Sequence record: PQ898602.1
Direction: 5' to 3' (one strand)
Length of the DNA: 64,000 nucleotides
This document shows positions 10,504 through 63,475 of the stretch, one piece after another (within the stretch, counting starts at the first letter, position 1; each line of letters opens with the position of its first letter). The position numbers were made by a program, and so were the translations under genes. The notes under the pieces were generated by a model, which saw only the letters and a list, made by a program, of their open reading frames with translations, had not been told where the DNA came from and did not search any database.

Positions 10504-10600
10504 AGTCCTGGAATGACGATAAACTTACCCTGGTGCGGATGGGATAACTCCCGCCAGGTTTCTTGTTTCCTGTAAAAGAACAAGTGGCGTGCATGTAAAG
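10504..10600 (+). ncRNA. structured RNA, probably wcaG RNA motif (module C)
   Basis: GGTGCGGATGGG-ATAA-CTCCCGCC hairpin then CTTGTT/AACAAG hairpin and TGGCGTGCATG; lies upstream of the sugar-epimerase operon as expected for cyanophage wcaG RNAs; family name from memory. Confidence 0.6.
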
Positions 10601-12233: not shown

Positions 12234-12275
12234 AATAAAGTATAATATATACTATGATATAATTACTCCTTTATC

Positions 12276-13322: not shown

Positions 13323-13323
13323 A

Positions 13324-15381: not shown

Positions 15382-15382
15382 C

Positions 15383-17810: not shown

Positions 17811-17816
17811 AAAGTC

Positions 17817-30984: not shown

Positions 30985-30985
30985 T

Positions 30986-33132: not shown

Positions 33133-33155
33133 TCTATGATAGAATACTTTCATTA

Positions 33156-33164
33156 ATTATACCA
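33156..33164 (-). promoter_or_regulatory. extended -10 promoter candidate for kdsA
   Basis: TG-G-TATAAT on the minus strand, 24 nt upstream of the ATG at 33132. Confidence 0.45.
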
Positions 33165-34060: not shown

Positions 34061-34745
34061 TAAACAAGGAATAGTCGATGCAGAGTTGCAGACGTTTCCG
34101 TGGGAACATATTTTAGTTGATAATTTTATTGAAGAAAATACCTTCAATGAACTTCTGAAGATTGCAGATCATATTAAAAGTATTGAATCTACCTTCAAAG
34201 AATCTATTCATTATGTACCAGAATATAATGAATGTGTATTTAATTTGAAACACCTCATTCAGATTGGTGTAGATCCAAAGGTTGTTGAACTTTATGCAAA
34301 AGTTCTGGATGATATCAAGGAACTGAAAACTACAATATGGGATAAGTTTTCTGATCATCGGCATTGTGAAGAGGATAGGACTTATTGTAATGGTCATTTA
34401 AACTGGACAGGTTCTGGTGGTTACTATCACATTCATCCAGATTCCCATACTAAAAGTGTAAGTATTATTGTTTACTTTGATCCTGACGAAAATAACACTA
34501 CGACTCTTTGGGGTAAACCTGGAGTCGAATCTACATGTGTTAGACCTGAGTGGAAAAGGAACAGAGCCGTTGTATTCTGCCCTAACAAATCCACTTGGCA
34601 CTCTGTAGATACTACACATAGTAATAGGATGACTCTTGCATGTTTTATTGAGTTTGTTCCTGAAGATAAAAGTTCATACGGAAAGTTCACTGTAGAAAAT
34701 ATCAGATTCAGTAAAGATTACTCAGTAACTCAACTTAGAATCTGA
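34050..34745 (+). CDS. 2OG-Fe(II) oxygenase-like
   Basis: PWEHILVDNF, HIHPD, EWKRNRAVVF..TWHSV..R. Confidence 0.75.
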   Translation: MLVNKQGIVDAELQTFPWEHILVDNFIEENTFNELLKIADHIKSIESTFKESIHYVPEYNECVFNLKHLIQIGVDPKVVELYAKVLDDIKELKTTIWDKFSDHRHCEEDRTYCNGHLNWTGSGGYYHIHPDSHTKSVSIIVYFDPDENNTTTLWGKPGVESTCVRPEWKRNRAVVFCPNKSTWHSVDTTHSNRMTLACFIEFVPEDKSSYGKFTVENIRFSKDYSVTQLRI

Positions 34746-35470
34746 TGAAAGTTCGTTGTATATACGAAGAGAATATAAGAAATAGACTTCCTAATGTATA
34801 CATACCCATTCAGAAGTTCTGTAAGTTTCAATATTTGCGTGATGTAAATCTGAATAGTGCAAAGTATGATCGTATATTTGATCTATCCTTTGATGAGTTC
34901 AAACGTAATGTGAATTTCATTGCACAGAGAAAAGAGAACTGGAATAACTATAGAGTTTCATCAATACTTAAATTACCCATTCTATACAGAGACATGATGA
35001 ACTATGGGAAGTGGAGAGACCCTATCGTCTTCACCCCATATGAACATACTATACCCGATGATGGTTCTGGAAGAACATTGGTAAGTAAGATTTTCTTTCC
35101 AGACATGCCTTATGATCTTTTGTATTATGAAAAGGAACATGATGATCTGAAATCCTTAAAAGAACTGATTAATATCTTTCATGATAATGTTAATCCAGGT
35201 TCCTACAAAGTCATTGATGTTTATTACAAGTTATATGGTGACTTTGCATATAGTAGACAGATTGAGTTTTTGAAAGAAGAGAAAGAAGTAAAAGAATTTT
35301 GTGGTAGTTGGACTTTGGATATTGTTCAGGAGTTGACTTCTACCCTATTCAAAGAAATGATCAGAAAGATTCGTAGTGATCCGCCTCAGACAGATGATGA
35401 TTATATTGAGTTATTAAAAGACCTTGTAAAGATGGATTATAAATTTAATAGTAAGTCTATATCTTATTGA
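34745..35470 (+). CDS. family X copy 3
   Basis: LKLPILY..DPIVF..DDGSGRTLVSKIFFPDM. Confidence 0.6.
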   Translation: MKVRCIYEENIRNRLPNVYIPIQKFCKFQYLRDVNLNSAKYDRIFDLSFDEFKRNVNFIAQRKENWNNYRVSSILKLPILYRDMMNYGKWRDPIVFTPYEHTIPDDGSGRTLVSKIFFPDMPYDLLYYEKEHDDLKSLKELINIFHDNVNPGSYKVIDVYYKLYGDFAYSRQIEFLKEEKEVKEFCGSWTLDIVQELTSTLFKEMIRKIRSDPPQTDDDYIELLKDLVKMDYKFNSKSISY

Positions 35471-36150
35471 AAATGTTCTACAACATTGATAGTATTCTCA
35501 AATCTGAACTTCGTAAGGAACCTTGGGAACATAAAGTTGTTGATAATTCAATCAATCCAGAGGTCTTCAAGACTCTCTCCCTTATTCCTAAGATGATCCT
35601 GAATAAGAATAGGAGAGGGACACCTTTGATGAGTAAGTTCATTCATGAATCCAAGGTGGATTATGAGGGTGCTGTTATGGATCTTGAAGAACTACTTAGA
35701 GTGGGTCTTGCGGAAAATATGGTAGAACTTCTTTATGATTGTGGTAAGTCTTTGTTTGATGCTAAAGATCAGATCTTAGAACAATTCTCTTCTTACCAGA
35801 AGTCTTCTGATGGAGAATATCTTTTTGATGTAAACTTGCAGTTTTTATTCCCAGGAAATGAAGTGAGTTTGCATGATGGTGGGTACAATAGGACTCTTTC
35901 ATGTGTTACTTACCTGAGCCCAGATATACAATCGGGAACACGGCTCGGTGATTCAACAGAAGTTGAATGGAAGAAAAATAGATCAATAATCTTTGCCCCA
36001 CATAAAGGAGTGACTTGGACTTCTTATGAAAATCCCTATGAGATGCAGTCGTTCCGATTTGTCATCAGTACTTTTGTTGAATTTGTAGAATATAAGAATA
36101 TCGAATTTTCTACTGGTAAGAAGTTTAAATTCTTGACTGGTTCCAAATGA
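35467..36150 (+). CDS. degenerate 2OG-Fe(II) oxygenase-like paralogue of 34050
   Basis: PWEHKVVDNS, EWKKNRSIIF; HxD reads HDG and the distal His reads T. Confidence 0.65.
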   Translation: MKMFYNIDSILKSELRKEPWEHKVVDNSINPEVFKTLSLIPKMILNKNRRGTPLMSKFIHESKVDYEGAVMDLEELLRVGLAENMVELLYDCGKSLFDAKDQILEQFSSYQKSSDGEYLFDVNLQFLFPGNEVSLHDGGYNRTLSCVTYLSPDIQSGTRLGDSTEVEWKKNRSIIFAPHKGVTWTSYENPYEMQSFRFVISTFVEFVEYKNIEFSTGKKFKFLTGSK

Positions 36151-36887
36151 ATATTTCTTACTATGGTCACCCTCTGGAGATGTATCCTGGGTGTGTGAAT
36201 AAAGAGACTGAAGAAGATACAAGGGTATGTAAACAATACTACTTTGAAGAAGAACCAAAGATATTGAACTATGAATATCTTTCCGAGACTACTCTGTCAA
36301 AGAAAGATATGACTCATACGATCTCAGTTTTCATGGAGGATGTGAACCATGTGAAGGATGGGAAGTACGATGATCCTGATGATGTTGTGGTGAATACGCC
36401 TACACACTTCACCAAACTTCCAACTCTTTACAGACAACTAAAAGAGGATCCATGCCTTCACTATCCAATATGGTATTACCCTAATGGGAACATGTTCAGT
36501 GGTTTGGGTAGAACTCTGATCATCACTAGGTATTTCAGAGAGATGACTTTGGATAAAGTCGTTTGCAATACTCAAGATGGTGGTTCAGTGCAGGACTTGA
36601 TTGATCGTATTAGTCGGAGTCGATACTGGAAAAACAAGTCCTTGACAGGGATGAATGCAGTTGTTATGATTGCGAACGTCGAAGCGCCACCGCATCAACT
36701 CTTTGTCCGTCAGTTGGAGTTTTCGGATAAGACATCCGACCAATTCCTTTCTGGACCTTGGGTGGAGTCATACCTCCATATGGATGACCTTTGGAGAGAG
36801 ATGAAGAAACTCATTATCTCTTTCAATACGTCAGAACCAAGAGACTACTTGCGGCTTCTAGATAAATTGATTCGGATTGACGCTTGA
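36147..36887 (+). CDS. family X copy 4
   Basis: FTKLPTLY..YPIWY..FSGLGRTLIITRYFREM. Confidence 0.6.
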   Translation: MNISYYGHPLEMYPGCVNKETEEDTRVCKQYYFEEEPKILNYEYLSETTLSKKDMTHTISVFMEDVNHVKDGKYDDPDDVVVNTPTHFTKLPTLYRQLKEDPCLHYPIWYYPNGNMFSGLGRTLIITRYFREMTLDKVVCNTQDGGSVQDLIDRISRSRYWKNKSLTGMNAVVMIANVEAPPHQLFVRQLEFSDKTSDQFLSGPWVESYLHMDDLWREMKKLIISFNTSEPRDYLRLLDKLIRIDA

Positions 36888-44027: not shown

Positions 44028-44497
44028 GCGAAGTAAGTTATAAAAAACACCGAGTATTTCGGGAAACAGACTCCGTAGTTTTCTACGACATTTCGGTGGA
44101 GGAATCAAATGCAAGTGACCTGGTTGTTCATACTGGACCTGCCATCTCGCCCCCGAATGACATCGTTGGTGCGAAACAATTTTACATTCACTATCATCAG
44201 GTAGATCACAATCGTGTCCTGTCTGGTACTCGTACTTTTGAGTTAGTGAATCCTGAGTGGAAGTTCCCGTATCATATTGTTCACCTTAATAGAACAAGTG
44301 GTGCATTAGTAGTTCCCAAAATGACTTTCCATCGTTCCATGTCTGGTGACGATGGTTCTATTGTAATTAACCAAGCTGTCCGTGACGATGAGTTTAACCC
44401 TGACACAGAGTTCATCCCCGTTTCCGCCGCTGAAAACGAAGACCTTTACAACATCCTTCGACATGAAAAACCAGTCATCCACCACGTCGGAGAATAA
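44024..44497 (+). CDS. cupin-fold protein
   Basis: YIHYHQVDHN, LVVPKMTFHRS. Confidence 0.65.
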   Translation: MSEVSYKKHRVFRETDSVVFYDISVEESNASDLVVHTGPAISPPNDIVGAKQFYIHYHQVDHNRVLSGTRTFELVNPEWKFPYHIVHLNRTSGALVVPKMTFHRSMSGDDGSIVINQAVRDDEFNPDTEFIPVSAAENEDLYNILRHEKPVIHHVGE

Positions 44498-44669
44498 GTT
44501 TCCTTTTGAAGGATTTCCTGTTCGACTTGAGATTTACGAAGGAAAAGGTAAACAAAAAACTACCCGAGTTTGTCACTTTCAATGTGTAGAACATGCAGAA
44601 CGTCAGATTGATCGATACAAACTAAAGAAACGTCAGTATAAAATGGAAATCAGAAAGGACGTTAAATAG
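44382..44669 (+). CDS. hypothetical protein
   Basis: ORF; true start uncertain, probably nearer 44490. Confidence 0.4.
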   Translation: MTMSLTLTQSSSPFPPLKTKTFTTSFDMKNQSSTTSENKFPFEGFPVRLEIYEGKGKQKTTRVCHFQCVEHAERQIDRYKLKKRQYKMEIRKDVK

Positions 44670-44689
44670 TAGTATGAATCAGTTAAAGT

Positions 44690-45025
44690 ATGCATGTAAA
44701 CAAACCTTGGGGTTGGTATAAAGACCTAAAGAGAACTCCTCAACTAGTGGTCAAACAACTATACGTCAAACCTTTTTCTAGATTTTCTTTACAGAAACAC
44801 TTCAAAAGAGAAGAAGCATGGTATATTGTTTCTGGAATTGGAAAGGTGACGATTGATCAAATGATCTATACAGTTGGACCTGGTGATACTTACATTGTTA
44901 AACCAGGTCAAGTTCATCGACTTGAAGCATATGCAGATGGTGTTGAATTTGTTGAAGTTCAACGTGGTGAGTGTTTTGAAGATGACATTGAGAGACTAGA
45001 AGATGACTTTGGAAGAACGATTTAG
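44690..45025 (+). CDS. mannose-6-phosphate isomerase type II C-terminal cupin
   Basis: KPWGWY, SLQKHFKREEAW, HRLE, EVQRGE..EDDIERLEDDFGR. Confidence 0.85.
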   Translation: MHVNKPWGWYKDLKRTPQLVVKQLYVKPFSRFSLQKHFKREEAWYIVSGIGKVTIDQMIYTVGPGDTYIVKPGQVHRLEAYADGVEFVEVQRGECFEDDIERLEDDFGRTI

Positions 45026-46648: not shown

Positions 46649-47267
46649 TGGTAACCTTTGGATTTGGAAATATGAAAAGAAGTTAGACTCTGACTTCTGT
46701 AGGAATGTTATACGAAAATTTGATAGAGACTTCAATCTTTATCATGGTGTAACTTTAGGTGATAAACCACAATATACAAGAAAAATATCCACAGACCTGG
46801 CGATCTCCGATCTCCCTGCATGGAGAGAAGAAGATACAATATTTGGGGAACATCTCCACGAAGGTCTTAATGCTTTCTGGAATTATTGTGAAGACAAACT
46901 ATTAGGTTATGAATTAGATTGGGACTATCCTGTTGACGACACTGGATATCAAATTCAAAGAAGTAAAGGTGGTGAGGGAAAATATGATTGGCATCACGAT
47001 GCATTTTATGACCCCAATGCATTTGACTGGTGCGAAGAATATGGACCTGCTAAAAGATACTTTACTTTTATTTGGTATCTGAATGATGTTCCTGGACCTG
47101 GAGGATACACTGAGTTTTACGACGGAACTCAAATTCAACCAGAAGAGGGTCAGCTGATTCTCTTTCCCTCAACTCACACTTTTATCCATAGGGGAGTCAG
47201 GCCACCCGTTGGACAAGACAAATATATATGTACAGGTTGGATCTATCATCCAATGAATCAAAGTTGA
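46635..47267 (+). CDS. 2OG-Fe(II) oxygenase (prolyl 4-hydroxylase-like)
   Basis: YDWHHD, TFIWYLNDV..GG.T.F, FPSTHTFIHRG..KY. Confidence 0.88.
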   Translation: MSSVNGNLWIWKYEKKLDSDFCRNVIRKFDRDFNLYHGVTLGDKPQYTRKISTDLAISDLPAWREEDTIFGEHLHEGLNAFWNYCEDKLLGYELDWDYPVDDTGYQIQRSKGGEGKYDWHHDAFYDPNAFDWCEEYGPAKRYFTFIWYLNDVPGPGGYTEFYDGTQIQPEEGQLILFPSTHTFIHRGVRPPVGQDKYICTGWIYHPMNQS

Positions 47268-47292
47268 CTTTTGATTTTTTCAGAAGTATAAT
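47264..47292 (+). promoter_or_regulatory. sigma70-like early promoter
   Basis: TTGACT-N17-TATAAT. Confidence 0.65.
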
Positions 47293-47312: not shown

Positions 47313-47702
47313 ATGTTTAAATCAAACAACGAAGTTGGACAATATTGTCCACTTGTCAAGAAAAACTGCATTGAAAACAAGTGTGCTTGGTGGATGCATG
47401 TCAGAGGTTTGAATCCTCAAACTGGTGAAGATATTGATCACTGGGGATGTGCAGTTACTTGGTTGCCTATGTTGACTATTGAAAACTCTCAACAACAACG
47501 TCAAACTGGTGCTGCTGTAGAGTCATTCCGAAATGAAGTTGTTAAATCAAACAGGATGAATAGAGACCTATATATGGAAGGTCTAAAAGCCATGGCTGAC
47601 GGGTCTCCTATCCTTCCCGTTCAGGTCACACCACTGACTAATCAAAACCTTTTAGAAGAAGAACCTACGGAGGAACCGAAAAATGAGGATGGTAGTAACT
47701 AG
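47313..47702 (+). CDS. Cys-rich hypothetical protein
   Basis: CPLVKKNC...CAWW...WGC. Confidence 0.65.
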   Translation: MFKSNNEVGQYCPLVKKNCIENKCAWWMHVRGLNPQTGEDIDHWGCAVTWLPMLTIENSQQQRQTGAAVESFRNEVVKSNRMNRDLYMEGLKAMADGSPILPVQVTPLTNQNLLEEEPTEEPKNEDGSN

Positions 47703-48111
47703 GGATGGAATGATCCAAATCGATGGATATGGTTACGACGGATGTAATATTTCTTTCGTAAGTGACATGAGTTGGATCCCTGGATATGATAGAAAGGAGT
47801 GGGGTGTATTCCATGCCCTACAATGGTATGATAAACCTGAATGGGATGATCCTACTGAAGACGAAATGGAAGGTTATCCTTACGGAGAGATTGAGTTTAC
47901 CAACTATCCGCCTGCACATAAAATTACTGAACTGGGTATCTTTGAAGCCGCAGTCGTTGAGTGGGAAAGACAAAAGAAAGCAGAAGAAAGTAGAATTGCT
48001 GCTGAAGAAGAGGAAAGAAAGGCAGAAGAAGCACGTCTTGCTGAGGAAGAGGCTAAAACTCTTGACACTTATCTAGAATTTGACTTGGAAGATTTATTGA
48101 CTGATCTCTGA
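47683..48111 (+). CDS. hypothetical protein (possible tail-fibre assembly-like)
   Basis: HALQWYD..GEIEF, acidic coiled-coil tail. Confidence 0.55.
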   Translation: MRMVVTRDGMIQIDGYGYDGCNISFVSDMSWIPGYDRKEWGVFHALQWYDKPEWDDPTEDEMEGYPYGEIEFTNYPPAHKITELGIFEAAVVEWERQKKAEESRIAAEEEERKAEEARLAEEEAKTLDTYLEFDLEDLLTDL

Positions 48112-48112
48112 C

Positions 48113-49396
48113 ATGAAACAAACACTTATTGATAATAATTACCTAGTAATTAAAAACTTTATCGATGTAGAAAGAGCTGCTGCATTATGTGAAGAGTTTA
48201 AAGATCATTGCGAAAGTAATAATCTACCTGGAGATCAACAGGTAGAAGAATCTCATGCTGCATATAATTACATGAGTTTCTTGGAACTTCTTACGGAGAA
48301 AACTCCAGAAGTTTCTAGAGCAATTGAAGAAAATGTACTTCCTACGTACACTTATGCTAGGATTTACAAGAATGGTGCAATCCTGAAACCTCATATGGAT
48401 AGGGATGCATGTGAGATTTCTTTGACCGTTCACCTTGATGGTGATATGGGGTGGCCAATCTTTGTTCAGACTCCTGACGGATCAACTGCAGAAGTTGTTC
48501 TTGAACCAGGAGATGCTTTAGTCTATTTGGGATGTGAAGCTCTTCATTGGAGAGAAGAGTTCAATGGGAATTATTATGGTCAAGCATTCTTGCATTATGT
48601 AAGAAGTCGTGGACCCCGTGCATACGCATTCTTTGATAATGATAAGGATTCTGTCACCCCAAGGACTCAAATTGATGAAGAAAAGAAAGTCGATTGGAAA
48701 GAAGTACCTAAACTAGACAAACCAGAATCTACAGAAAAGAGAGATAAGTTCCGTTTCAATAAGAAACCACAATTCACTCCCTCTGCAAGAGAAGAGAGAG
48801 TTCTCCAATCTAAAAAAGAAGAGTTGTTGACTTCCACTCTTGAAAGTTATATCAAAATTTTTGAAGATGAAGTTCCTACAGAACTTTGTAACCGCATTCT
48901 CGACGAGTATGTAAACTCTGATGACTGGGTTCCCGCAGAAGTTATTGATAAGAATGCACCCGTCAACAAAGACATCAGAAATTGTAGTTGTGTCTACATG
49001 AGTAGTCCTGAATGTATTGAAAAAAATCAGGTAGTTAGATCTAAACTAGATGAAGATCTTCATGCAGTTATGATGAAAGTTGCAGAAAAATATGCAGGGC
49101 TTTTCCCGAATATTAACATCTCTATGGATACTGGTTACAATCTTCTGAGATATGAAACAGGTCAATTCTATACAACTCATTGTGATGACTACAAGGATGA
49201 CCCAAGAGTTCTCTCATGTACTGTTTCTCTGAATCATGAGTATGATGGTGGTGAATTTTCATTCTTCAATGATGAAATGTTAGTTCGCACGAATACTGGT
49301 GGTGTAATTTGTTTCCCATCTAACTTCATGTACCCTCATGGTGTTCGAGAAGTTGTTAAAGGCACTCGATACGCAATCGTTACTTGGTTTAGATGA
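48113..49396 (+). CDS. tandem two-domain 2OG-Fe(II) oxygenase
   Basis: Domain 1: HMDR..CEIS..HWRE..FLHYV; domain 2: HCD..GGEF..FPSNFMYPHGV..RY. Confidence 0.85.
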   Translation: MKQTLIDNNYLVIKNFIDVERAAALCEEFKDHCESNNLPGDQQVEESHAAYNYMSFLELLTEKTPEVSRAIEENVLPTYTYARIYKNGAILKPHMDRDACEISLTVHLDGDMGWPIFVQTPDGSTAEVVLEPGDALVYLGCEALHWREEFNGNYYGQAFLHYVRSRGPRAYAFFDNDKDSVTPRTQIDEEKKVDWKEVPKLDKPESTEKRDKFRFNKKPQFTPSAREERVLQSKKEELLTSTLESYIKIFEDEVPTELCNRILDEYVNSDDWVPAEVIDKNAPVNKDIRNCSCVYMSSPECIEKNQVVRSKLDEDLHAVMMKVAEKYAGLFPNINISMDTGYNLLRYETGQFYTTHCDDYKDDPRVLSCTVSLNHEYDGGEFSFFNDEMLVRTNTGGVICFPSNFMYPHGVREVVKGTRYAIVTWFR

Positions 49397-50184
49397 CCAC
49401 ACTTAATTCTATACCTCCTATCCGTTACTTGAACTTAGACAAGAACGAAGATAGGAGGTTTTTTATTGAGAAACAATTTGAGAAGTATGGTGTTACCAAC
49501 TTCAAAAGGATTAGTGCGGACAGATATGGTGTAGATAAGTATGATGAGTGGAGTTTTGAAGGAGAGTTAAATGAGAGACCTAGACTCTCCACTCTTTTGA
49601 ATCAGTTTCAAAGTATCATTGACTGGTATCATGAGGATAGTTCGGAAACATGTATTATTGCTGAAGATGATCTCAATCTAGATCTTTGTAAGTATTGGAG
49701 ATTTGATTGGAACTACTTTGAGTCACATCTACCATGCAACTGGGATTGTATTCAACTTCATGTTGTGGGTGAGAAGTATATTCCGATGGGATTGTCGATA
49801 AGAAACAGAACTCTTCACTCTGCTGCTTGTTATCTAATCAATAGAGACTTTGCAAGAAAGTTAAAGAAGATATTCTATAGACAGGGAACATTTGAGTTTC
49901 CGATAAACTATGGATACCACCATTCTTGGCCTCAATATCATTATCAGTCTGCAGATTTCTTACCATATAATATTGGAGTTACCTATTCATTTCCCTTGTT
50001 TATTACCAACTCTAGTTTCAAGAGTGATAGTTTGGAAGGTAAGTTGATAAACCAAATGGTAATCAAATCAGATAAAGTTGTTGCAAATTGGTGGGTAAAT
50101 AGATCAAAAGACTACTCTCTGGATGATTTGTTCTGTTGTCAGAATCCAGATCGAATGAAACTTATTGTTCCAATCAAACAATGA
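49393..50184 (+). CDS. GT25-like glycosyltransferase
   Basis: YLNLD..DRR, IIAEDDL, WDCIQL, CYLINRDFA. Confidence 0.7.
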   Translation: MTTLNSIPPIRYLNLDKNEDRRFFIEKQFEKYGVTNFKRISADRYGVDKYDEWSFEGELNERPRLSTLLNQFQSIIDWYHEDSSETCIIAEDDLNLDLCKYWRFDWNYFESHLPCNWDCIQLHVVGEKYIPMGLSIRNRTLHSAACYLINRDFARKLKKIFYRQGTFEFPINYGYHHSWPQYHYQSADFLPYNIGVTYSFPLFITNSSFKSDSLEGKLINQMVIKSDKVVANWWVNRSKDYSLDDLFCCQNPDRMKLIVPIKQ

Positions 50185-50990
50185 ATAAACTAGAAGGGTT
50201 ACCAAAAATATATTATATCAATCTCGATGATCGCCCTGATCGTAGAGAGTATATGGAAGACCAGTTTAGGTGGTGGGAGATTAGTAACTATGAACGTGTG
50301 AATGCTTCTAGATTTAGAAAAGAAGAGTGGTCCGATTGGTGTGACATGGTTCACTATCCAGAATTCTATCCTTCACATAGACATAGATCAGTTGCAGTTT
50401 CTTTATCACACTTTGAATGTTTGAGAGAGTGGTACGAAACTACTAATGAAGATCAAGTCATTATCTTGGAGGATGATACCGACTTTAGTAATGTTGAAAA
50501 CTGGAACTTTACTTGGAAAGATGTAATGGATCGTTTGCCTTTTGATTGGGAGGCGTTTCAGTTCTGTTATAACTCTGTAGATTACTTTAGATGTAACCTT
50601 CACCTTAAAAGTCAGACCAGTTTTAATGGTCCAATTCTACTGACTAGACCTTATGTGAAGAAACTATTAGATCTTTATTTTAAAAAAGGAAAGTATAATT
50701 TCATCACAAAATATTTTGGATCACCTTATCTGGGTTATCCTATCAATGATGATAAACATTGTATCAGAGATGTTGATAACATGATTGGGCATCATGGAAG
50801 AGTTTATCAAATGCCTCTTGTAGGTCAGAATACTGTGCTTGATGAAGAACGTCGAACTCCCCATCTTTTCTGTTCTGCATCATTGAAAAGATTCTGGGCA
50901 AAGGAACATGACATTGATGATCTTTTCTCATATAATACTGATAAAGATTTGAGTATGACATATAAACTAAATCCTGGTATCCGAAAATGA
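50181..50990 (+). CDS. GT25-like glycosyltransferase
   Basis: YYINLDDRPDRR, SLSH, IILEDD. Confidence 0.75.
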   Translation: MNKLEGLPKIYYINLDDRPDRREYMEDQFRWWEISNYERVNASRFRKEEWSDWCDMVHYPEFYPSHRHRSVAVSLSHFECLREWYETTNEDQVIILEDDTDFSNVENWNFTWKDVMDRLPFDWEAFQFCYNSVDYFRCNLHLKSQTSFNGPILLTRPYVKKLLDLYFKKGKYNFITKYFGSPYLGYPINDDKHCIRDVDNMIGHHGRVYQMPLVGQNTVLDEERRTPHLFCSASLKRFWAKEHDIDDLFSYNTDKDLSMTYKLNPGIRK

Positions 50991-51676
50991 AGAAGTATTG
51001 TCTTAATCATACTCAAGAACTCAGAGATCATACAGAAAAGGAGATCCGTTCTCTGGGGTGGGATAACTTTGAAGGTGTAGTTTATCCAGAACCTTTGGAT
51101 GATCAGAACAAATCAGAACTCATCCTTGGAGTTCTTGATAGGTGGTTGAAAGAAAGTCATGATGACATGGTAATGATCACCTTTGATGATCTATTCTATG
51201 GGTTCTATCGACACTCTGGTTTCAATCTAGATCTTATCGTAAATAAAACACCAGAAGACTGGGATAATATCTTGTTGGGATTTGAGAATCTCCATGGAAC
51301 TATTCCATTCTTCATGCATAAGACTATGGAGTCTCATTTGTCTGGTCCTACCATCTTGAAGAGATCGTATGCTGACAGGTTGGTAAACATTGTTGGAGAT
51401 TCTCCACAGGTTTGTGATAACTTGTGGAAAGATAATTTTTCATATCATTATTTCTTAAACAAATGTGGTAAGAGTTATGCATATCCACTCTTACCTAGAC
51501 ATTATAAATTAGTAAGTGACTCTAGAGTAGATCTAGAGAGACAAACAAGAATGTATTCTATATTCTGGACCAAGTATTATGGTAAGGAGTATCCTAAAGA
51601 AAACTTCTTCAAACTAGAGAGTGAACCATGCCTTAATACGGACAGATTACTCTATCGCAATAGGAAATTGATTTAA
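50987..51676 (+). CDS. divergent GT25-like protein
   Basis: YCLN, ITFDD (EDD degenerate), PEDWDNILL, ILKRSYADRL. Confidence 0.5.
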   Translation: MKKYCLNHTQELRDHTEKEIRSLGWDNFEGVVYPEPLDDQNKSELILGVLDRWLKESHDDMVMITFDDLFYGFYRHSGFNLDLIVNKTPEDWDNILLGFENLHGTIPFFMHKTMESHLSGPTILKRSYADRLVNIVGDSPQVCDNLWKDNFSYHYFLNKCGKSYAYPLLPRHYKLVSDSRVDLERQTRMYSIFWTKYYGKEYPKENFFKLESEPCLNTDRLLYRNRKLI

Positions 51677-52263
51677 TGTTTCACTTAGTCCGTCAGTTTG
51701 AGAGAGAAATTGCAAGATTCTATGGTGCTCCTTATGGTATCGCCACTGATTCGTGTACCCATGCGATTGAGTTGTGTCTTCGTTATGGTGGATTCAATAA
51801 CGTAACCATACCGACTCACACATATGTCTCAGTTCCAATGACCTGTAACAAACTAGGTCTTGATTGGGAATGGAAAGAAGAGAAATGGAATGACTGGTAT
51901 CTGATTGGTAACACAAACATTGTTGATGCTGCAGTTCTGTGGGGTGCTGACACATATCTACCTGGAACATTCATGTGCCTCAGTTTCCAGTACAAGAAAC
52001 ACCTATCTCTTGGTCGAGGTGGTATGATTTTATGTTCCGATGAGGATGCTGTTCGTGCATTACGGAAGATGGTTTACGATGGTCGTGATATCTTAGAACC
52101 CTGGAGAGATCAGAACATTTCCACCATGGGTTATCACTATTACATGACGCCCGAGGTGGCAAAAATGGGTATTGATTTACTAAATGGTCGGAAAAAATTT
52201 CCGGCAAAAAAATGGAGCCACAGGGATTATCCTAATTTGTCGGACATGGAGGTGTTCAAATGA
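51676..52263 (+). CDS. truncated-format DegT/DnrJ/EryC1/StrS PLP aminotransferase (195 aa)
   Basis: FEREIA..YGIATDSCTHAI, DAA, SFQYKKHL..GRGG, GYHYYM. Confidence 0.8.
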   Translation: MFHLVRQFEREIARFYGAPYGIATDSCTHAIELCLRYGGFNNVTIPTHTYVSVPMTCNKLGLDWEWKEEKWNDWYLIGNTNIVDAAVLWGADTYLPGTFMCLSFQYKKHLSLGRGGMILCSDEDAVRALRKMVYDGRDILEPWRDQNISTMGYHYYMTPEVAKMGIDLLNGRKKFPAKKWSHRDYPNLSDMEVFK

Positions 52264-53060
52264 GAGAGATTCCGAACCTTGATGTTCATATTACGCATGA
52301 TTGCAATTTTCAGTGTGAGAACTGCTCTCATTTTATGCAACATAAGTTTCGGGGAACTCATATCTCTTTAGAAGAAATAGAATCCTGGTATTCAAAGTGG
52401 TATCAACGTATTCTTCCTACTAACCTAGGTTTGCTTGGAGGAGAACCTTTCCTTCATCCAAATCTCCCAGAGATGTGTCATCTTTCTAGGAAGTATTTTC
52501 CCAACTCTGAAATAGAAGTAGTAACAAATCTGACTCTGGTGCATTTACACCCAGAACTTTGGAAAGACCTAATCAAATCTGATATTATTCTTTCCATTTC
52601 AATTCATAGTCGAGATCCTGACTACGCAAAAGTATTGCAACCCAAATTGGAAATCGCAAAAGAATGGAAACGAAGAGGTGCGAAGGTAAGAGTTGTAGAT
52701 TCTGTAAAAGAATGGAATAAAGTCTATATGGGTGATGGCGAAGATATTCTTCCTTATGAACATTTGAATCCTCAGGAAAGTTGGAATAATTGCCCTGTTG
52801 GTCAAATCTGTTTTCAACTACATGAAGGTCATATCTGGAAGTGTGCTCCACTCGCATTCTTACCTATGATGAAGAAGAAGTATCCGAATATTTCCGATAA
52901 GTGGGATCCATATCTAACGTACAAACCATTAACTTCTGATTGTAGTGATGAAAAACTTGAAAGTTTCTTCAATAGAGGATGTGAAATGTATTGTTCAATG
53001 TGCCCATCAGTAAGAGAACATCAAGATAAACAAAATCCATTGATTAATAGAATACGATGA
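52260..53060 (+). CDS. radical SAM protein with C-terminal Cys cluster (SPASM/twitch-like)
   Basis: CNFQCENC, LLGGEPFLHP, VVTN, C..C..WKC, CEMYCSMC. Confidence 0.88.
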   Translation: MREIPNLDVHITHDCNFQCENCSHFMQHKFRGTHISLEEIESWYSKWYQRILPTNLGLLGGEPFLHPNLPEMCHLSRKYFPNSEIEVVTNLTLVHLHPELWKDLIKSDIILSISIHSRDPDYAKVLQPKLEIAKEWKRRGAKVRVVDSVKEWNKVYMGDGEDILPYEHLNPQESWNNCPVGQICFQLHEGHIWKCAPLAFLPMMKKKYPNISDKWDPYLTYKPLTSDCSDEKLESFFNRGCEMYCSMCPSVREHQDKQNPLINRIR

Positions 53061-53893
53061 AACTGAAAGGATTACCTGAAATATATTATCTTAATCTTGA
53101 CGAAAGACCTGATCGAGTTGAATATACGGAAACTCAATACGAAAAACATGGTATCACCAACTTCCGTAGATGGTCTGCATCTGAATATCAACTCTATAAC
53201 TTCAAAGAGTGGAGGAGTAAGGTCAGATTAAATGATATGACCGAGTGTAAGAAGTTGAAACAACATATCATTGAGATTGCGATCTCCATGTCTACAATGG
53301 ATATGTTAAGACACTGGTATGAGAACTCCACGGAACCCTATGTCCTCTTAATGGAGGATGATTATGATCTTCAGTGGATTGATTACTGGCATTTTGACTG
53401 GGAATATCTAATGAATCATCTTCCCTTTGATTGGGATTGTATTCAGTTGAGTTTTGAGAATGAAAAGGTCATTCCCTGTTTCCTTCACCCCATCCATCCA
53501 TACCACTGCACTGGTGCTGCACTTATTAATAGACCATATGCAGAAAAGTTGATAAGACTATTATATAAGGATGGAAAGTATGATTTTTCCCAACGGATTC
53601 AAAATTACAAGTGGGGAAAAATGCTGGACATGCCTAATAGGACTATTGACTACTTCTTATGTCATGCAGGCAGAACGTATTCTATTCCTCTGATTAGTCT
53701 TAATCCTGGTATGGGAAGTTATAGTAAAAATATAAAGAGAAATGATAGACCCGACTTGGATCTTGCCTGGAGGGCCTATAATAAGTGGTGGAAAGAGTTG
53801 CGAGATGATTACTCTCTAGAAGAGTTTTTCATGTTCGGTAAACCAAATGATAGATATATTACAAGGAAAGAACCAGGTCTGGACAAGTATTAA
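53057..53893 (+). CDS. GT25-like glycosyltransferase
   Basis: YYLNLDERPDR, LLMEDD, LPFDWDCIQL. Confidence 0.75.
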   Translation: MKLKGLPEIYYLNLDERPDRVEYTETQYEKHGITNFRRWSASEYQLYNFKEWRSKVRLNDMTECKKLKQHIIEIAISMSTMDMLRHWYENSTEPYVLLMEDDYDLQWIDYWHFDWEYLMNHLPFDWDCIQLSFENEKVIPCFLHPIHPYHCTGAALINRPYAEKLIRLLYKDGKYDFSQRIQNYKWGKMLDMPNRTIDYFLCHAGRTYSIPLISLNPGMGSYSKNIKRNDRPDLDLAWRAYNKWWKELRDDYSLEEFFMFGKPNDRYITRKEPGLDKY

Positions 53894-54387
53894 TGGATCA
53901 CATTAAACCACAATGGGATATCGAAGATTTTAAGAATCTTGATTATACCTATGCAACTCATAATGATCCTCTGTTAGTGAACGAATATTTGTGGGCAGGT
54001 CATAATAAGGAGAAACTTTCCATCTATAAATATCATGAACCCAATCCCATGCCGACGTGTATGGAATATGTGAAAGGTCTTTTCTCGGATTGGGATAGTG
54101 TTGGACTTGCCGTTAATTATTTCAAACCAGGTCAATATCTACCACTTCACGTAGATCTATTTGGTAGATATTTGAAAATCCATAACACCAAACCCGAGAA
54201 TGTAAATCGGTGCATGGTAATGTTAGAGGATAGTTCACCTGGTCAGATTTTACAGATTGACGATGTATGTCACTGCAAGTGGAAATCGGGAGACTGCTTC
54301 TACTGGGAATACGAAACACCTCATGCTTTCTATAACATGAGTATGATAGATCGATACGCAATTCAAGTTACTGGTGTAGTGAGATGA
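53893..54387 (+). CDS. 2OG-Fe(II)/AspH-like cupin oxygenase
   Basis: LPLHVD, GQIL, WKSGD, TPHA..N..R..IQVTG. Confidence 0.65.
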   Translation: MDHIKPQWDIEDFKNLDYTYATHNDPLLVNEYLWAGHNKEKLSIYKYHEPNPMPTCMEYVKGLFSDWDSVGLAVNYFKPGQYLPLHVDLFGRYLKIHNTKPENVNRCMVMLEDSSPGQILQIDDVCHCKWKSGDCFYWEYETPHAFYNMSMIDRYAIQVTGVVR

Positions 54388-55343
54388 AAAGTACAAATGA
54401 GTGGGATCCACTCAAAAAAGTGATTGTTGGTGTTGCTGATTATGCAAGAATCCCTGAGATGGATAAAAGTCTCAGACACATCAACTATGCAGATAGACAA
54501 GATGTTTCCGATGTCATCAGTGGATTGTATCCCAAACAAGTCATTGATGAAGCAAATGAAGATCTAGAAAACTTTGCAAACTTCCTAAGAGTTTGTGGAG
54601 TGGAGGTAGTAAGGCCGCATCCTGAACCAACTGGATATTACAACTTCTGCCCCAGAGATGTTGTCGTTGTTCATGGTGAAACGGAGATTGCGGCTCCGAT
54701 GCCTTTGAAAGCAAGACGATTTAACTTTGGGTCGATTGCACATTATTTGAACAACCTTACACCTGTTACTTGCACTTACAATGATGCATTGTATAACGAG
54801 AATTGTATTGGTGATAAGGACACTCTTGCACTGACAGAGTACGAACCTGCCTTTGATGCTGCCAACATCATCAGAGCGAACGATCAGATCCTCTACCTCC
54901 TGTCTAATAGTGGTAACAGGAAAGGTGCCCAGAAACTCCAGACACTCCTGCCAGAGACCGAGGTACACCTCTTAGAGGGTGTTTATAGTTATATGCATAT
55001 AGACACGACTGTCGCGTTCCTGAGGGAGGGCCTGCTACTTGCCAACCCCGAAAGGATTAAGGATCGTGATGTCCTTCCTGGTCCATTCAAAGACTGGGAT
55101 ATTATCTGGTGTCCAGAACCAGTTGACATCGGACATTACCCTGGATATAACAATGCTTCCACTTGGATTAACATGAACTTATTCAGTATTAATCCCAATC
55201 TGGTTGCTCTTGAGATGAATCAAGAACCCACTAGAAAAGTCCTGGAACAACATGGTATCGAGTGTGCAATGTTGCCTATGAGACATTCTAGAACTCTAAG
55301 TGGATGTTTCCACTGCGTAACCTTAGACCTGGAGAGAGGATGA
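54384..55343 (+). CDS. amidinotransferase (StrB1/AGAT-like, copy 2)
   Basis: NEWDPLKKVIVG, CPRD, FDAAN, YMHIDTT, GCFHCVTLD (Asp-His-Cys triad). Confidence 0.9.
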   Translation: MKSTNEWDPLKKVIVGVADYARIPEMDKSLRHINYADRQDVSDVISGLYPKQVIDEANEDLENFANFLRVCGVEVVRPHPEPTGYYNFCPRDVVVVHGETEIAAPMPLKARRFNFGSIAHYLNNLTPVTCTYNDALYNENCIGDKDTLALTEYEPAFDAANIIRANDQILYLLSNSGNRKGAQKLQTLLPETEVHLLEGVYSYMHIDTTVAFLREGLLLANPERIKDRDVLPGPFKDWDIIWCPEPVDIGHYPGYNNASTWINMNLFSINPNLVALEMNQEPTRKVLEQHGIECAMLPMRHSRTLSGCFHCVTLDLERG

Positions 55344-56146
55344 AAGCAGTAAGTATCATTACTGCATGTAAGAATAGGGAACTTTCACTAAGAGTCTCCC
55401 TAATGACTTGGATGCAGTTCAAAGAAGTTGCAGAGATTATCATTGCTGATTGGAGTTCTGATAAATCTCTAAATTATCTGACTGAATGGGATAAAAGGAT
55501 TAAAGTCATCAGTGTCCCAAATCAAAAGTATTTCAATCAACCTCAACCACTCAATATCGCTGCAAGTGTTGCATCATCACAAAAGATCTTGAAGTTGGAC
55601 AATGATCACATTTTGAATCCATACTACAATTTCTTCAAAGACTATAAGATCAACGAAGAGAGTTTCCTGTGTGGTAGAAATGATTATGACTCGGATGTAT
55701 ATCGTGGTATTTGGGGAATGCTTTATGTCTACCGCAAAAACTTTTGGAACGTCGGTGGATTCAACGAAGACATGGGTCAATACTACTCATATGAAGATGA
55801 TGATATGACTCATCGACTTGAATTGAGTGGTCTCCAAATGAAAAAGATCATTCCAGAGACACATAGAATCATTCACATGCCTCACCCAGATGGTAAGAGA
55901 ATTGAACATTTCCAAGGGGATGCTGAGTTGAGTGACTATGAAGTCAGACTTCGCAAAAAAATGGGTGAAAGATTCTCTGGAAATTCGCTAGATAAGAGAG
56001 TGGGTGGTATAATGTCTTCAAGGCATAATTACAACAATAGGATGCAGTTCGACCTCAGTGAGGTCAAAGAACCTGTAGTACAAAGAAAGTATCATTGGAA
56101 CCTGGAGAAAATCAATGACCAAGAATACCGAGCGACTCCAGCATGA
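55340..56146 (+). CDS. GT2/GT7-C-like glycosyltransferase
   Basis: ITACKNR, ADWSS, KLDND, VGGFNE..YEDDD..RL, IHMPH. Confidence 0.8.
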   Translation: MKAVSIITACKNRELSLRVSLMTWMQFKEVAEIIIADWSSDKSLNYLTEWDKRIKVISVPNQKYFNQPQPLNIAASVASSQKILKLDNDHILNPYYNFFKDYKINEESFLCGRNDYDSDVYRGIWGMLYVYRKNFWNVGGFNEDMGQYYSYEDDDMTHRLELSGLQMKKIIPETHRIIHMPHPDGKRIEHFQGDAELSDYEVRLRKKMGERFSGNSLDKRVGGIMSSRHNYNNRMQFDLSEVKEPVVQRKYHWNLEKINDQEYRATPA

Positions 56147-56345
56147 AGGTGAAAAGAAGTTTCACCCATCTGGACTGAATATCATCGAAAACTCTGATGG
56201 ATCTTTCTCATTTGAGTGGGATCCTGAAGATGATCGTTGGAAATGGATGAACAACTTGACAGATGACCAGATCAAGTCTATTATCGAGGAAGGAATTCAA
56301 AAACAAGCATTTCTAGAGGAACTCGCAAATGAATACGACCTATGA
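56115..56345 (+). CDS. hypothetical protein
   Basis: 76 aa ORF. Confidence 0.55.
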   Translation: MTKNTERLQHEGEKKFHPSGLNIIENSDGSFSFEWDPEDDRWKWMNNLTDDQIKSIIEEGIQKQAFLEELANEYDL

Positions 56346-56865
56346 GTCGCAACGAAAGGAACGACTCTCTGATGTGATCTTTGATTACCTTCAAGATGAG
56401 GACACCAGTCCTGAAAAACTCTACACTGATATTCGAGAAGAGATTATCAATGCACTAGAGCACTTTGAAAAATACGCTGACAGGTGTCGTCGTGCTCGGG
56501 ATTTGATCACGGATGACTTCTTCCCCACTAATAGTGACTACAAAGAACATTGTTACTATGATTCGGAGTCTGAAGGTAGAGACTTCTATAGCAACGATAC
56601 GCATCCAGAAATTTCACCACCAGATCTTACTGATGCACGTATTCAGGCCACATCTCCTTTCAATGATGGTTGGACCCAAGAGTTTTACCGAGAACAGATC
56701 TCACGAAACGATCCCGATCGAATTGATTACAAGGATCCTTGGGTCTATGAGTCTCCAGACGGAGGAAAAACTATTACCAAACGTAAACCAGGGTCTCTGG
56801 AAAAGTATCCCATCACTCGGGATGAAATTAACGAACACTACAAAAATCTTGGAAACGCTGACTAA
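56329..56865 (+). CDS. hypothetical protein
   Basis: 178 aa; C-terminal VYESPDGGKT motif. Confidence 0.65.
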   Translation: MNTTYESQRKERLSDVIFDYLQDEDTSPEKLYTDIREEIINALEHFEKYADRCRRARDLITDDFFPTNSDYKEHCYYDSESEGRDFYSNDTHPEISPPDLTDARIQATSPFNDGWTQEFYREQISRNDPDRIDYKDPWVYESPDGGKTITKRKPGSLEKYPITRDEINEHYKNLGNAD

Positions 56866-57083
56866 TGCTATCTACATCCGTAAATGAATCTCTGACTGAC
56901 GCAGAACAATCACTTAGGAATGCTCTTGCTTTTGCTGCAAGGGGTGAACGACCTTTGGTCTGCACCACAATCGCAGACATGATTTCTAAGATTGAGAGTC
57001 TAAAGTCTACAGACGAAATCTTGGACAAACTTGAAAATCGTAAGGAAGGGGATTCTGGATCCTTTGGTTCTTGGTTTGAATAG
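56865..57083 (+). CDS. hypothetical protein
   Basis: 72 aa ORF. Confidence 0.65.
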   Translation: MLSTSVNESLTDAEQSLRNALAFAARGERPLVCTTIADMISKIESLKSTDEILDKLENRKEGDSGSFGSWFE

Positions 57084-62065: not shown

Positions 62066-63475
62066 ATGAACATTGTTGTAGTAGGTGGTGGAACCTCTGG
62101 ATGCATATCTGCACTGATCCTTAAACAAAGGTTCCCACAATATGATATCCATATAATTGAATCATCAAAGATCGGTACCATTGGAGTGGGAGAAGGTTCC
62201 ACTGAACATTGGACCGATTTTTGTGATTATGTAGATATCGATATGGGAGATGTGCTCCGAGAGTGTGGTGCAACATTCAAGATGGGAATCCTCTTTGATA
62301 AGTGGGATGATGAACCATTCATGCACTCTCTACTACCAGATACCTGTAGAAATGATCATGGATACTACTATACATATGCACACCAGATTGTAAACAACTA
62401 TCCCAAGAGGGATATGCAATCTGAATATGTTTGGAATAACGAGTGCCCTGAAGATGGATTGGAAGTTCGTCAGTTGCACTTCGATACTGATAAACTCAAT
62501 AAGTTTTTACATAAGAAATGTTTTGAACGTGGTATCAGTGTTCATGTTGATGATATCAAATACGTTCATGTTGGTGAAGGTATTGAGTATGTAGAAGGAA
62601 ATAAAAGATATTATGCTCATGTATTCATTGATTGTACGGGATTCCGAAGACTTCTGATTAGTAAACTGGGTGTAGGTTGGAAATCATATAGTGAGTATCT
62701 ACCTTTAAACTCTGCAATCACCTTTCCCACTGCAGAACAAAAAGAATATAACATGTGGACTAAGGCAACTGCCTATGATGCGGGATGGGGATGGACTATT
62801 CCAACCAGGGATAGAACTGGAAACGGATATGTTTTCTGCGACAAGTTCATCACCACTGATGAAGCTAAGGATGAGATGCGAAAACATCATGGTCAGTACA
62901 TCCGATTCGGTAAGGAATTTAAGTTTGATCCTGGACGTGTAGAAAAATTCTGGGAACGTAATTGTATTGCTGTTGGTCTTGCTGGTAGTTTCGTTGAACC
63001 ACTTGAAGCATCGTCTATTGGATCAACTATTCAACAGGTATTCGCTCTTACTCAGATGTTGCCTTCCTGGAGTCAGGATAGATACAATAAGGTTGTAATT
63101 GATATATTTGACAACATTGTTGACTATATCGTTGCACACTATCTGACTCGTAGAGAAGACACTCCATTTTGGAAATACATAAAAGAGAATCTGAAGATAC
63201 CTAAATCTTTACAGGATTTACTTTCAATGTGGGAAAACAGATTGCCACATTCTTCAGACATGTACATTCCATGGGAAATGTTCCATGCTGCGAACTATGT
63301 TCCTATTCTTCATGGTCTAAACTGGTTCAATGTCAACAAAATAAAGCATGAATACAATTCTTTTCCTAATCACCAAAGAATAGAAAAAGAAATGAAAGAC
63401 TTGAAAGACTTTTACAAACGTGTTCCGAAGAAGGGACATAAACGTACTCTTCAGATGTTGACAAAACGGCGCTGA
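62066..63475 (+). CDS. flavin-dependent (tryptophan) halogenase, PrnA/VirX1-like
   Basis: GGGTSG, IGVGEGS, ATFKMGI (catalytic Lys), DCTGF, WGWTIP, FVEPLEAS. Confidence 0.92.
   Translation: MNIVVVGGGTSGCISALILKQRFPQYDIHIIESSKIGTIGVGEGSTEHWTDFCDYVDIDMGDVLRECGATFKMGILFDKWDDEPFMHSLLPDTCRNDHGYYYTYAHQIVNNYPKRDMQSEYVWNNECPEDGLEVRQLHFDTDKLNKFLHKKCFERGISVHVDDIKYVHVGEGIEYVEGNKRYYAHVFIDCTGFRRLLISKLGVGWKSYSEYLPLNSAITFPTAEQKEYNMWTKATAYDAGWGWTIPTRDRTGNGYVFCDKFITTDEAKDEMRKHHGQYIRFGKEFKFDPGRVEKFWERNCIAVGLAGSFVEPLEASSIGSTIQQVFALTQMLPSWSQDRYNKVVIDIFDNIVDYIVAHYLTRREDTPFWKYIKENLKIPKSLQDLLSMWENRLPHSSDMYIPWEMFHAANYVPILHGLNWFNVNKIKHEYNSFPNHQRIEKEMKDLKDFYKRVPKKGHKRTLQMLTKRR

Follow-up and report, generated by a model that had tools for sequence, protein, structure and literature searches.

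A candidate glycan-tailoring cassette of T4-like cyanomyoviruses that pairs a half-size sugar aminotransferase homologue with a predicted amidinotransferase

We analyzed a 64,000-nucleotide (nt) stretch of DNA, referred to here as the window, that matches at 100% identity the 244 kb genome of Synechococcus phage S-SCSM2R (PQ898602.1), a T4-like cyanomyovirus isolated on WH7803. Window positions equal record positions minus 180186. Positions 49393-56146 encode several glycosyltransferases (GTs; g1, g2, g3, g6, and g9), a truncated homologue of DegT-family sugar aminotransferases (g4, the mini-DegT), a radical S-adenosylmethionine (SAM) enzyme (g5), a putative 2-oxoglutarate (2OG)/Fe(II) oxygenase (g7), and a predicted amidinotransferase (g8). 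The genes belong to recognizable enzyme families with intact catalytic residues, are packed in the manner of co-transcribed genes, and are conserved in association with one another. We put the chances at about even that this cassette is a modular glycan-tailoring unit of T4-like cyanomyoviruses, with N-amidination of an amino sugar as its signature step.

The gene association recurs in many viral genomes. A scan of IMG/VR with g8 recovered 330 viral contigs, and the best 80 of these (65-99% identity, contigs of <=249 kb) were mapped with all cassette proteins; all counts out of 80 below refer to this set. Alongside g8, the mini-DegT occurs in 74 of the 80 loci, g7 in 71, and three to six GT25-like genes in about 72. 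Two genes that lie upstream of g1 are also frequent: the oxygenase gene g0 (49/80) and the small gene u2 (50/80). The commonest order is u2-g0-GT-GT-GT-miniDegT-g7-(rSAM)-AmT, where rSAM stands for the radical SAM gene and AmT for the amidinotransferase gene. In a second order, g7 and the mini-DegT are followed by five or six GTs and then by the amidinotransferase. Since g4, g7, GTs, and g8 are held together in both orders, their association outlasts rearrangement. Genes downstream of 57929 are conserved in related contigs and genes upstream of about 46466 are not, so the cassette lies at a variable site beside a conserved backbone of related phages.

Nine plus-strand genes fill 49393-56146, and every junction between them is a 4-nt or 1-nt overlap, as a sequence-only reading of this DNA had stated. 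The overlaps were computed with the annotated starts at 50181 and 55340, both of which were checked and are ATG. As the 427-amino acid (aa) gene g0 (48113-49396) also overlaps g1 by 4 nt, there are nine consecutive junctions in a run of ten genes. Short overlaps are common in the genome (39 of 115 junctions, 34%); this run is the longest in the window, the next longest having three junctions, and nine consecutive overlaps at a given place have p ~6e-5 if junctions are assumed to be independent. These values support the same reading's proposal of one co-expressed unit. All nine of its gene labels also hold, through Pfam or PHROG matches, through StrB1 homology in the case of the amidinotransferase, and through predicted fold plus motifs in the case of the oxygenase. 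Gene order, whose loss it had named beforehand as a possible refutation, is conserved in the best 80 of the 330 contigs. Its fixed nine-gene unit has to be redrawn: the radical SAM and GT2 genes are accessory, and g0 and u2 belong to the conserved block. None of the cassette genes is broken.

The gap-free block that contains the cassette extends from 47313 to 57083, with gaps of 45 nt on its upstream side and 203 nt on its downstream side. The best sigma70-like promoter match of the region lies inside the 45-nt gap at the head of the block. Of 36 distinct viral loci, 10 have a match of at least 10/12 ahead of the orthologous gene, versus 4.7% of control windows; as the match is only modestly conserved, we count it as weak evidence. 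The window contains five late-type TATAAATA motifs, none of them at the block head; together with the sigma70-like site, this weakly fits a block that is expressed early and has its target in the host cell. No RNA element turned up in or beside the cassette in an Rfam scan. The small genes at 56115-57083 match generic phage families and form part of the conserved downstream backbone, and we therefore exclude them from the cassette unit.

By homology, g8 is a clear amidinotransferase, and L-arginine is its predicted amidino donor. Its best match among solved structures is StrB1 (1bwd; E 1.2e-60 over residues 4-318), followed by HsvA (1.6e-38), AGAT (8e-36), and SxtG (2e-30); the window protein has no significant Pfam match. 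Residues C311, H205, D158, D92, and D207 of g8 align with C332, H227, D179, D108, and D229 of StrB1, and all five are invariant in 20 phage orthologues (65-100% identity). We take the Cys, His, and Asp of StrB1 to be its catalytic set and the two further Asp to be substrate-binding. Although the resemblance to StrB1 runs end to end (residues 4-318 of 319) and includes these residues, g8 is about 30 residues shorter, has a 12-residue deletion after residue 78, and is viral, and its neighbors are a sugar aminotransferase homologue and glycosyltransferases rather than cyclitol enzymes.

The g8 family comprises 6192 protein clusters in addition to the 330 viral contigs of the IMG/VR scan, and contigs carrying g8 relatives reach about 259 kb, which is phage-sized. 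Among cultured phages, close homologues of g8 were found only in S-SCSM2R, and the same is true of g4. Given a phage family found on 330 viral contigs with one cultured representative, S-SCSM2R is a natural reference for the chemistry. Cellular relatives (215 genome contigs) have at most 43% identity. The only other cultured phages with a g8 relative are those of 12 Campylobacter phage records (including FN667788 and FN667789; 22-25% identity), where the proteins are annotated as possible glycine amidinotransferases. The window itself contains a second, divergent amidinotransferase-like gene at 33167-34060, which is 24% identical to g8, has a weak C-terminal match to AGAT (E 0.002), and keeps the Cys and His in a pairwise alignment with g8. 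This gene is located in a separate block (29628-36887) with KdsB, KdsA (minus strand), and 2OG oxygenases. The second amidinotransferase-like protein (open reading frame 266, ORF266) and ORF269 were detected in purified virions (PMC12801897).

The presumed partner of g8 in amination chemistry, g4, matches Pfam DegT (PF01041) in two stretches, at 64 bits versus a cut-off of 19.8. The matches stop near position 265 of the 360-position profile, and the segment between positions ~85 and 185 is shortened to 36 residues. In AHBA synthase and GDP-perosamine synthase the Schiff-base motif contains a single Lys, and K108 aligns with it. D84, the putative counterpart of the Asp that pairs with the pyridine nitrogen of pyridoxal phosphate (PLP), lies at the expected place in a D-A-A-type motif. 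K108 and D84 are invariant in sets of 20 and of 41 relatives. The AlphaFold2 (AF2) model has a predicted local distance difference test (pLDDT) score of 92, and its first 50 Foldseek matches consist almost entirely of named aminotransferases of sugars or aminocyclitols, with template modeling (TM) scores of 0.63-0.79 on the query. The matches cover only 0.32-0.43 of their targets, corresponding to the PLP-binding domain. Thus g4 shares the PLP large-domain fold, the Schiff-base Lys, and N-terminal motifs with aminotransferases that act on nucleoside diphosphate (NDP)-sugars (GDP-perosamine synthase, ArnB, CalS13, PglE, and DesI), but it has 195 residues instead of the 360-400 of the two-domain DegT architecture and no C-terminal small domain.

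This short form is not peculiar to S-SCSM2R. The mini-DegT family contains 7833 protein clusters at 90% identity, mostly metagenomic, and the best 120 are 165-204 aa long, most of them about 195 aa. No in-frame stops were found among 73 g4 orthologues. The conserved short length and the lack of stops indicate a truncated variant rather than a broken gene. These ~195-aa "half" sugar aminotransferases make up a very large family whose members are automatically named as if they were full-length.

Clues to the substrate come from the neighborhoods of other mini-DegT genes. With the mini-DegT as anchor we found more than 563 viral contigs, and we examined 72 new loci. An amidinotransferase is present in 38 of the 72, and all 38 also have g7. 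A further 22 loci with room on both sides have no amidinotransferase, and in these the mini-DegT occurs in other nucleotide-sugar contexts. It is found beside a GDP-mannose 4,6-dehydratase (E 2e-114), an FdtA-like cupin, and a sugar C-methyltransferase in one locus (L200, 6838-9557), and beside a formyltransferase, two short-chain dehydrogenase/reductase (SDR) enzymes, and a radical SAM/SPASM protein in another (L219, 6430-10628); a third (L163, 6021-9064) likewise has a mini-DegT and no amidinotransferase. In Flavobacterium phage immuto the mini-DegT gene (30% identity) comes after a mannosyltransferase gene and before an NDP-sugar epimerase gene and a gene annotated as pilin glycosylation protein, which we take to be of the sugar N-acetyltransferase type. 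In L062, a locus of rearranged order, the genes on the flanks of the cassette encode a full-length DegT, two members of the UDP-sugar dehydrogenase family, and an SDR.

Other loci show how the parts of the cassette come and go. Five (L169, L171, L175, L181, and L184) keep u2, u1 (a second small gene at the head of the block), g0, six GTs, and g4, and are missing both g7 and g8. In L164 a natural fusion (6127-7320; P0130) joins an N-terminal mini-DegT to a C-terminal member of the g7 family. The fusion gene overlaps an SDR dehydratase/epimerase gene by 4 nt, has no accompanying amidinotransferase, and is followed downstream by two radical SAM genes. Read from these gene contexts, the mini-DegT behaves as a putative NDP-keto-sugar aminotransferase. 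Because mini-DegT relatives without g8 adjoin other NDP-sugar enzymes, the variable component appears to be the enzyme that comes after it, with the amidinotransferase as one option.

The product of g7, which is predicted to act at or after the amination step, is most likely a 2OG/Fe(II) oxygenase. It is placed by predicted fold and conserved motifs, since single-sequence and profile searches against the PDB returned nothing significant and no significant Pfam match was found either. The AF2 model (pLDDT 97.3) is a double-stranded beta-helix, and its PDB fold neighbors are prolyl hydroxylases (P4H and proline 3-hydroxylase), AsqJ, AspH, and small cupins (TM 0.4-0.53). Named neighbors among viral models (BFVD) are nearly all 2OG oxygenases or Asp/Asn/Pro hydroxylases. 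Among 61 relatives with identities as low as 22%, D88, H144, R154, and R106 are invariant and H86 is conserved in at least 90%. The protein thus has the HxD...H triad (H86, D88, and H144) and, ten residues after the second His, the Arg (R154) by which 2OG/Fe(II) oxygenases are recognized. Its C-terminal motif aligns with AtsK around the His and Arg of AtsK (E 0.05). Asp_Arg_Hydrox scores 15 bits on the window protein, below the threshold of 22.6, and is weakly matched by 19 of 20 g7 orthologues (best E 6.6e-4). Comparison of the g7 family profile with the FdtA-like cupin of L200 and with a neighboring phage 2OG oxygenase gave a probability of 0.1, which is uninformative on the alternative that g7 is a ketoisomerase.

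The radical SAM enzyme g5 matches Pfam PF04055 at 45.9 bits versus a threshold of 29.5 and has no SPASM match in Pfam. The CX3CX2C cysteines (C15, C19, and C22) are invariant in 12 relatives, as are C178, C184, C195, C245, and C248; the five C-terminal Cys make an auxiliary Fe-S site probable. Among solved structures it comes closest to 7wzv (E 4e-10), then to GDGT-MAS, viperins, and MoaA. A literature search by the entry code 7wzv yielded nothing relevant, and we draw no function for g5 from it. BtrN (4m7s/4m7t) is of similar size and has a radical SAM core, and the conserved C-terminal Cys of g5 suggest one auxiliary cluster as in that enzyme, but the sequence similarity is not significant (E 0.08, confined to the N-terminal core, versus 4e-10 for the unrelated 7wzv), and a BtrN-like assignment was rejected. 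The gene is found in 24 of the 80 loci, at several positions and once inverted.

We infer every substrate, the step order, the product, and the acceptor of the following pathway from these enzyme families and gene contexts. An NDP-keto-deoxyhexose would be provided by a phage SDR dehydratase encoded elsewhere (for example, at 12276-13322) or by the host. PLP-dependent g4 would transaminate it to an NDP-amino sugar, and g8 would transfer the amidino group of L-arginine to that amine, with a guanidino sugar and ornithine as products. Either the amino sugar or its guanidino form may be hydroxylated by g7, and g5, where present, could carry out further tailoring. It is an attractive detail that a glutamate-dependent aminotransferase would release 2-oxoglutarate, which g7 would consume. 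The GT25-like array (g1, g2, g3, and g6) and the GT2 enzyme g9 would then assemble the sugars on an acceptor, which is probably a glycan of the infected-cell envelope and possibly a hydroxylated protein prepared by g0. The sequence-only reading had proposed this same succession of DegT transamination, amidino transfer, and use by glycosyltransferases. It gains from the likeness of g8 to StrB1, from the pairing of g4 and g8 in 74 of the 80 loci, and from the NDP-sugar enzymes that flank mini-DegT relatives. The fuller proposal is possible rather than probable in our judgment: many uncultured T4-like cyanophages would make an N-amidino deoxyhexose and incorporate it into a glycan, either of the infected cell or of the virion. 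Its synthesis would rely on a previously unrecognized half-size PLP aminotransferase and on an amidinotransferase of the StrB1 type that accepts a nucleotide sugar, and a dedicated 2OG oxygenase would further hydroxylate or possibly cyclize the guanidino sugar.

Several points weigh against this pathway. Relative to characterized DegT enzymes, g4 lacks the entire C-terminal domain and about 50 large-domain residues, so its catalytic competence is not assured. The natural acceptor of StrB1 is a phosphorylated cyclitol and not an NDP-sugar. Cellular relatives of g8 on the 215 contigs have no g4, g7, or GT25 neighbors and thus supply no functional anchor. Six of the loci with g8 have no g7, the TM-scores of g7 to named entries are modest (0.4-0.6), and small sugar-isomerase cupins are also among its matches. 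In the literature searched, no guanidino sugar is reported from S-SCSM2R or its hosts. Neither a nucleotidyltransferase nor a dehydratase is encoded within the cassette. In favor of the pathway, the window encodes elsewhere SDR dehydratase-family, UDP-sugar dehydrogenase, and mannose-6-phosphate-isomerase-type proteins, and these genes could supply the cassette precursor.

An explanation that differs mainly in the acceptor is collagen-type protein glycosylation, in which g0 would hydroxylate Pro or Lys, the GT25-like enzymes would glycosylate at those residues, and g4, g7, and g8 would tailor the sugars. GT25 includes eukaryotic collagen galactosyltransferases that act on hydroxylysine. The domain of prolyl-hydroxylase type in g0, which is overlap-coupled to the first GT, would suit such a route, and the u2-g0-GT25 module is widespread on its own in cyanophages. 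The only significant solved relative of the GT profile is a Mimivirus glycosyltransferase, and purified virions contain the other amidinotransferase-like protein and a prolyl-hydroxylase-like protein (PMC12801897). However, the reported virion proteome includes no cassette protein (PMC12801897), and no protein emerged as a candidate acceptor. According to Pfam, GT25 is a lipopolysaccharide (LPS) biosynthesis family, and the block head has no late-type promoter motif. On balance we regard a protein acceptor of this kind as unlikely, though worth weighing. The sequence-only reading had also allowed for a cyclitol made by streptidine logic and for a BtrN-like dehydrogenase role of the radical SAM enzyme. 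The cyclitol option, like the label "antibiotic synthesis genes" given in the genome paper, suggests a diffusible small molecule resembling an aminocyclitol or aminoglycoside. Twitch-type radical SAM enzymes do include a cyclitol dehydrogenase, g8 is closest among solved structures to StrB1 of streptomycin biosynthesis, and cyclitol aminotransferases such as BtrR (DegT family) are among the fold matches of g4. Neither idea fared well: inositol-phosphate synthase, inositol dehydrogenase, kinase, phosphatase, and exporter genes are lacking from the cassette and from the 80 related loci, every informative mini-DegT context consists of NDP-sugar enzymes, BtrN is not a significant relative of g5, and g5 varies in position and is missing from 56 of the 80 loci. 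Four to six glycosyltransferases would also suit a polymer better. With its defining cyclitol enzymes absent, the cassette should not be filed under the streptidine pathway, and we consider a diffusible small molecule improbable.

It is also quite improbable that g8 is a stand-alone auxiliary metabolic gene, making guanidinoacetate or another guanidino compound or converting arginine to ornithine, and that the sugar genes adjoin it only through their common location in a hyperplastic region. Relatives of g8 are automatically named glycine amidinotransferase, its similarity to AGAT is significant, homologues in cells are found without sugar genes, and the genes downstream of the cassette are conserved phage genes with no relation to sugars. 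Against this, g4 and g8 remain paired in 74 of the 80 loci across two gene orders, g7 and g8 come and go together within an otherwise identical GT-DegT block, and g8 is closer to StrB1 (E 1e-60), with its bulky sugar-like amine acceptor, than to AGAT (E 8e-36). Very improbable, in our view, is decoration of phage DNA with glycosylated or hypermodified bases as a protection against restriction. PLP and radical SAM enzymes act in known thymidine hypermodification pathways. The genome paper proposes DNA glucosylation among the roles of the many GTs of this phage (PMC12801897). Family searches of the cassette proteins, however, gave no base hydroxymethylase, hydroxymethyl-nucleotide kinase, or DNA-modifying family, GT25 and GT2 are annotated for LPS and polysaccharide work, and the mini-DegT relatives adjoin NDP-sugar enzymes.

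Returning to glycan tailoring with an N-amidinated amino sugar, the cassette can be compared with the pathways for N-acetyl and N-formyl amino-deoxyhexoses of O-antigens and S-layers. The neighborhoods of the mini-DegT share their logic of dehydratase, aminotransferase, and N-modifying enzyme; the difference is that the enzyme after the cassette aminotransferase is a predicted amidinotransferase. The cassette would be a new variant of this familiar amino-sugar route, with an unprecedented N-modifying step and a minimal aminotransferase. No pathway with such an N-amidination of an NDP-amino sugar is known to us, and the literature searched yielded none. Like the fibril-glycan clusters of Mimivirus (R655, 9crz), the cassette combines virus-borne sugar-tailoring enzymes with several glycosyltransferases, but its host is bacterial, and the similarity to R655 is limited to the N-terminal 95 residues.

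The genes themselves have appeared in print. The S-SCSM2R genome paper (BMC Biol, December 2025) assigns ORF302-304, 307, and 310 to the cell-wall glycosyltransferases and groups ORF305, 306, and 309 under "antibiotic synthesis genes", the presence of which, it says, "remains unclear" (PMC12801897). That paper places the same genes in separate categories and does not describe the operon, its conservation in viral contigs, the modular core, or the truncation of the aminotransferase. The word undescribed, used in the sequence-only reading, accordingly applies to the pathway, as none is given there, and not to the genes, which are listed singly (PMC12801897). Our search for literature on phage amidinotransferases with glycosyltransferases found nothing else. 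The present analysis corrects the published label "antibiotic synthesis genes".

If the proposed pathway is right, the amidino group would be a new N-substituent among the modifications of amino sugars, and the product would represent a class of guanidino sugar that is not known from any glycan. A guanidinium is permanently cationic, and its presence on a cell-surface glycan would alter surface charge. Such a change could bear on superinfection exclusion, grazing, and adsorption in some of the most abundant phototrophs of the ocean.

Table 1. Cassette genes, the genes that precede them in the gap-free block, and the promoter match, in window coordinates
Feature	Position	Strand	Basis or occurrence
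Sigma70-like promoter match	47264..47292	+	-35 and -10 hexamers, 17-nt spacer, 11/12; consensus match only
u2, 129-aa Cys-containing protein, first gene of the gap-free block	47313..47702	+	50/80 loci
u1, 140-aa acidic protein, variably present	47689..48111	+	17/80 loci
g0, 427-aa probable oxygenase, C-terminal 2OG-FeII_Oxy_3 and N-terminal oxygenase-like half	48113..49396	+	Pfam, PHROG
g1, GT25-like glycosyltransferase, 263 aa	49393..50184	+	PHROG 2835 E 1.6e-33, no Pfam match
g2, GT25 glycosyltransferase, 269 aa	50181..50990	+	PHROG 2835 E 5.6e-37; Pfam PF01755 31.7 bits (cut-off 24)
g3, divergent shorter GT25-like protein, 229 aa	50987..51676	+	PHROG 2835 E 2.8e-5 only
g4, mini-DegT, 195-aa PLP-domain-only sugar aminotransferase homologue	51676..52263	+	Pfam DegT
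g5, radical SAM enzyme, 266 aa, accessory gene	52260..53060	+	Pfam Radical_SAM
g6, GT25-like glycosyltransferase, 278 aa, best conserved paralogue	53057..53893	+	PHROG 2835 E 5.5e-37
g7, small double-stranded beta-helix protein, 164 aa	53893..54387	+	AF2 fold, conserved motifs
g8, predicted L-arginine-dependent amidinotransferase, StrB1/AGAT family, 319 aa	54384..55343	+	Homology to PDB 1bwd
g9, GT2-type glycosyltransferase, 268 aa, accessory	55340..56146	+	Pfam PF00535 25.9 (cut-off 23.3), Glyco_transf_7C 33.4 (cut-off 23)

The four GT25-like proteins have PHROG 2835 ("glucosyltransferase") in common, and g2 alone passes the Pfam threshold for GT25; g1, g3, and g6 are without a Pfam match. 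In a joint alignment the paralogues are 26-31% identical to g6. One Asp is invariant across 30 GT25-like paralogues and is retained even in the divergent g3. Orthologues of g6 (53-69% identity) directly precede the mini-DegT in most loci. The GT25-like family profile weakly matches the Mimivirus glycosyltransferase R655 at E 8e-4. The GT2-type gene g9 occurs in 22 of the 80 loci, usually further downstream and away from the core.

Upstream of the GTs, g0 is probably a tandem double oxygenase. Residues 343-427 match 2OG-FeII_Oxy_3, a family of prolyl-hydroxylase type (Pfam 4.7e-17), and residues 5-181 match PHROG 3531/2954; the N-terminal half also shows an HxD...H motif, noted by eye only. Relatives of g0 occur in 198 phage records and are often annotated as "ferrochelatase" in RefSeq cyanophage records, a name that is probably wrong. 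Orthologues of u2 have a median identity of 66% and always lie ahead of g0. Neither u2 nor u1 matches a Pfam or PHROG family.

Several genes outside the block were noted. At the end of the window (62066-63475) there is a 469-aa gene annotated as PrnA (tryptophan halogenase type), which has no counterpart in the 80 related loci. Upstream of the block, a small gene annotated as dTDP-4-dehydrorhamnose 3,5-epimerase (44096-45025) has no Pfam match, and a mannose-6-phosphate-isomerase-type cupin (Pfam E 4e-23) is encoded 2-3 kb upstream of the cassette; each of these is kept in 8 of the 80 related loci. A first sugar cluster (10641-23165) contains SDR dehydratase/epimerase genes, a UDP-sugar dehydrogenase, an NAD synthase, and several GTs, and may feed precursors to the cassette. 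Ahead of this cluster, at 10501-10598, is a wcaG RNA (Rfam RF01761, 82.5 bits).

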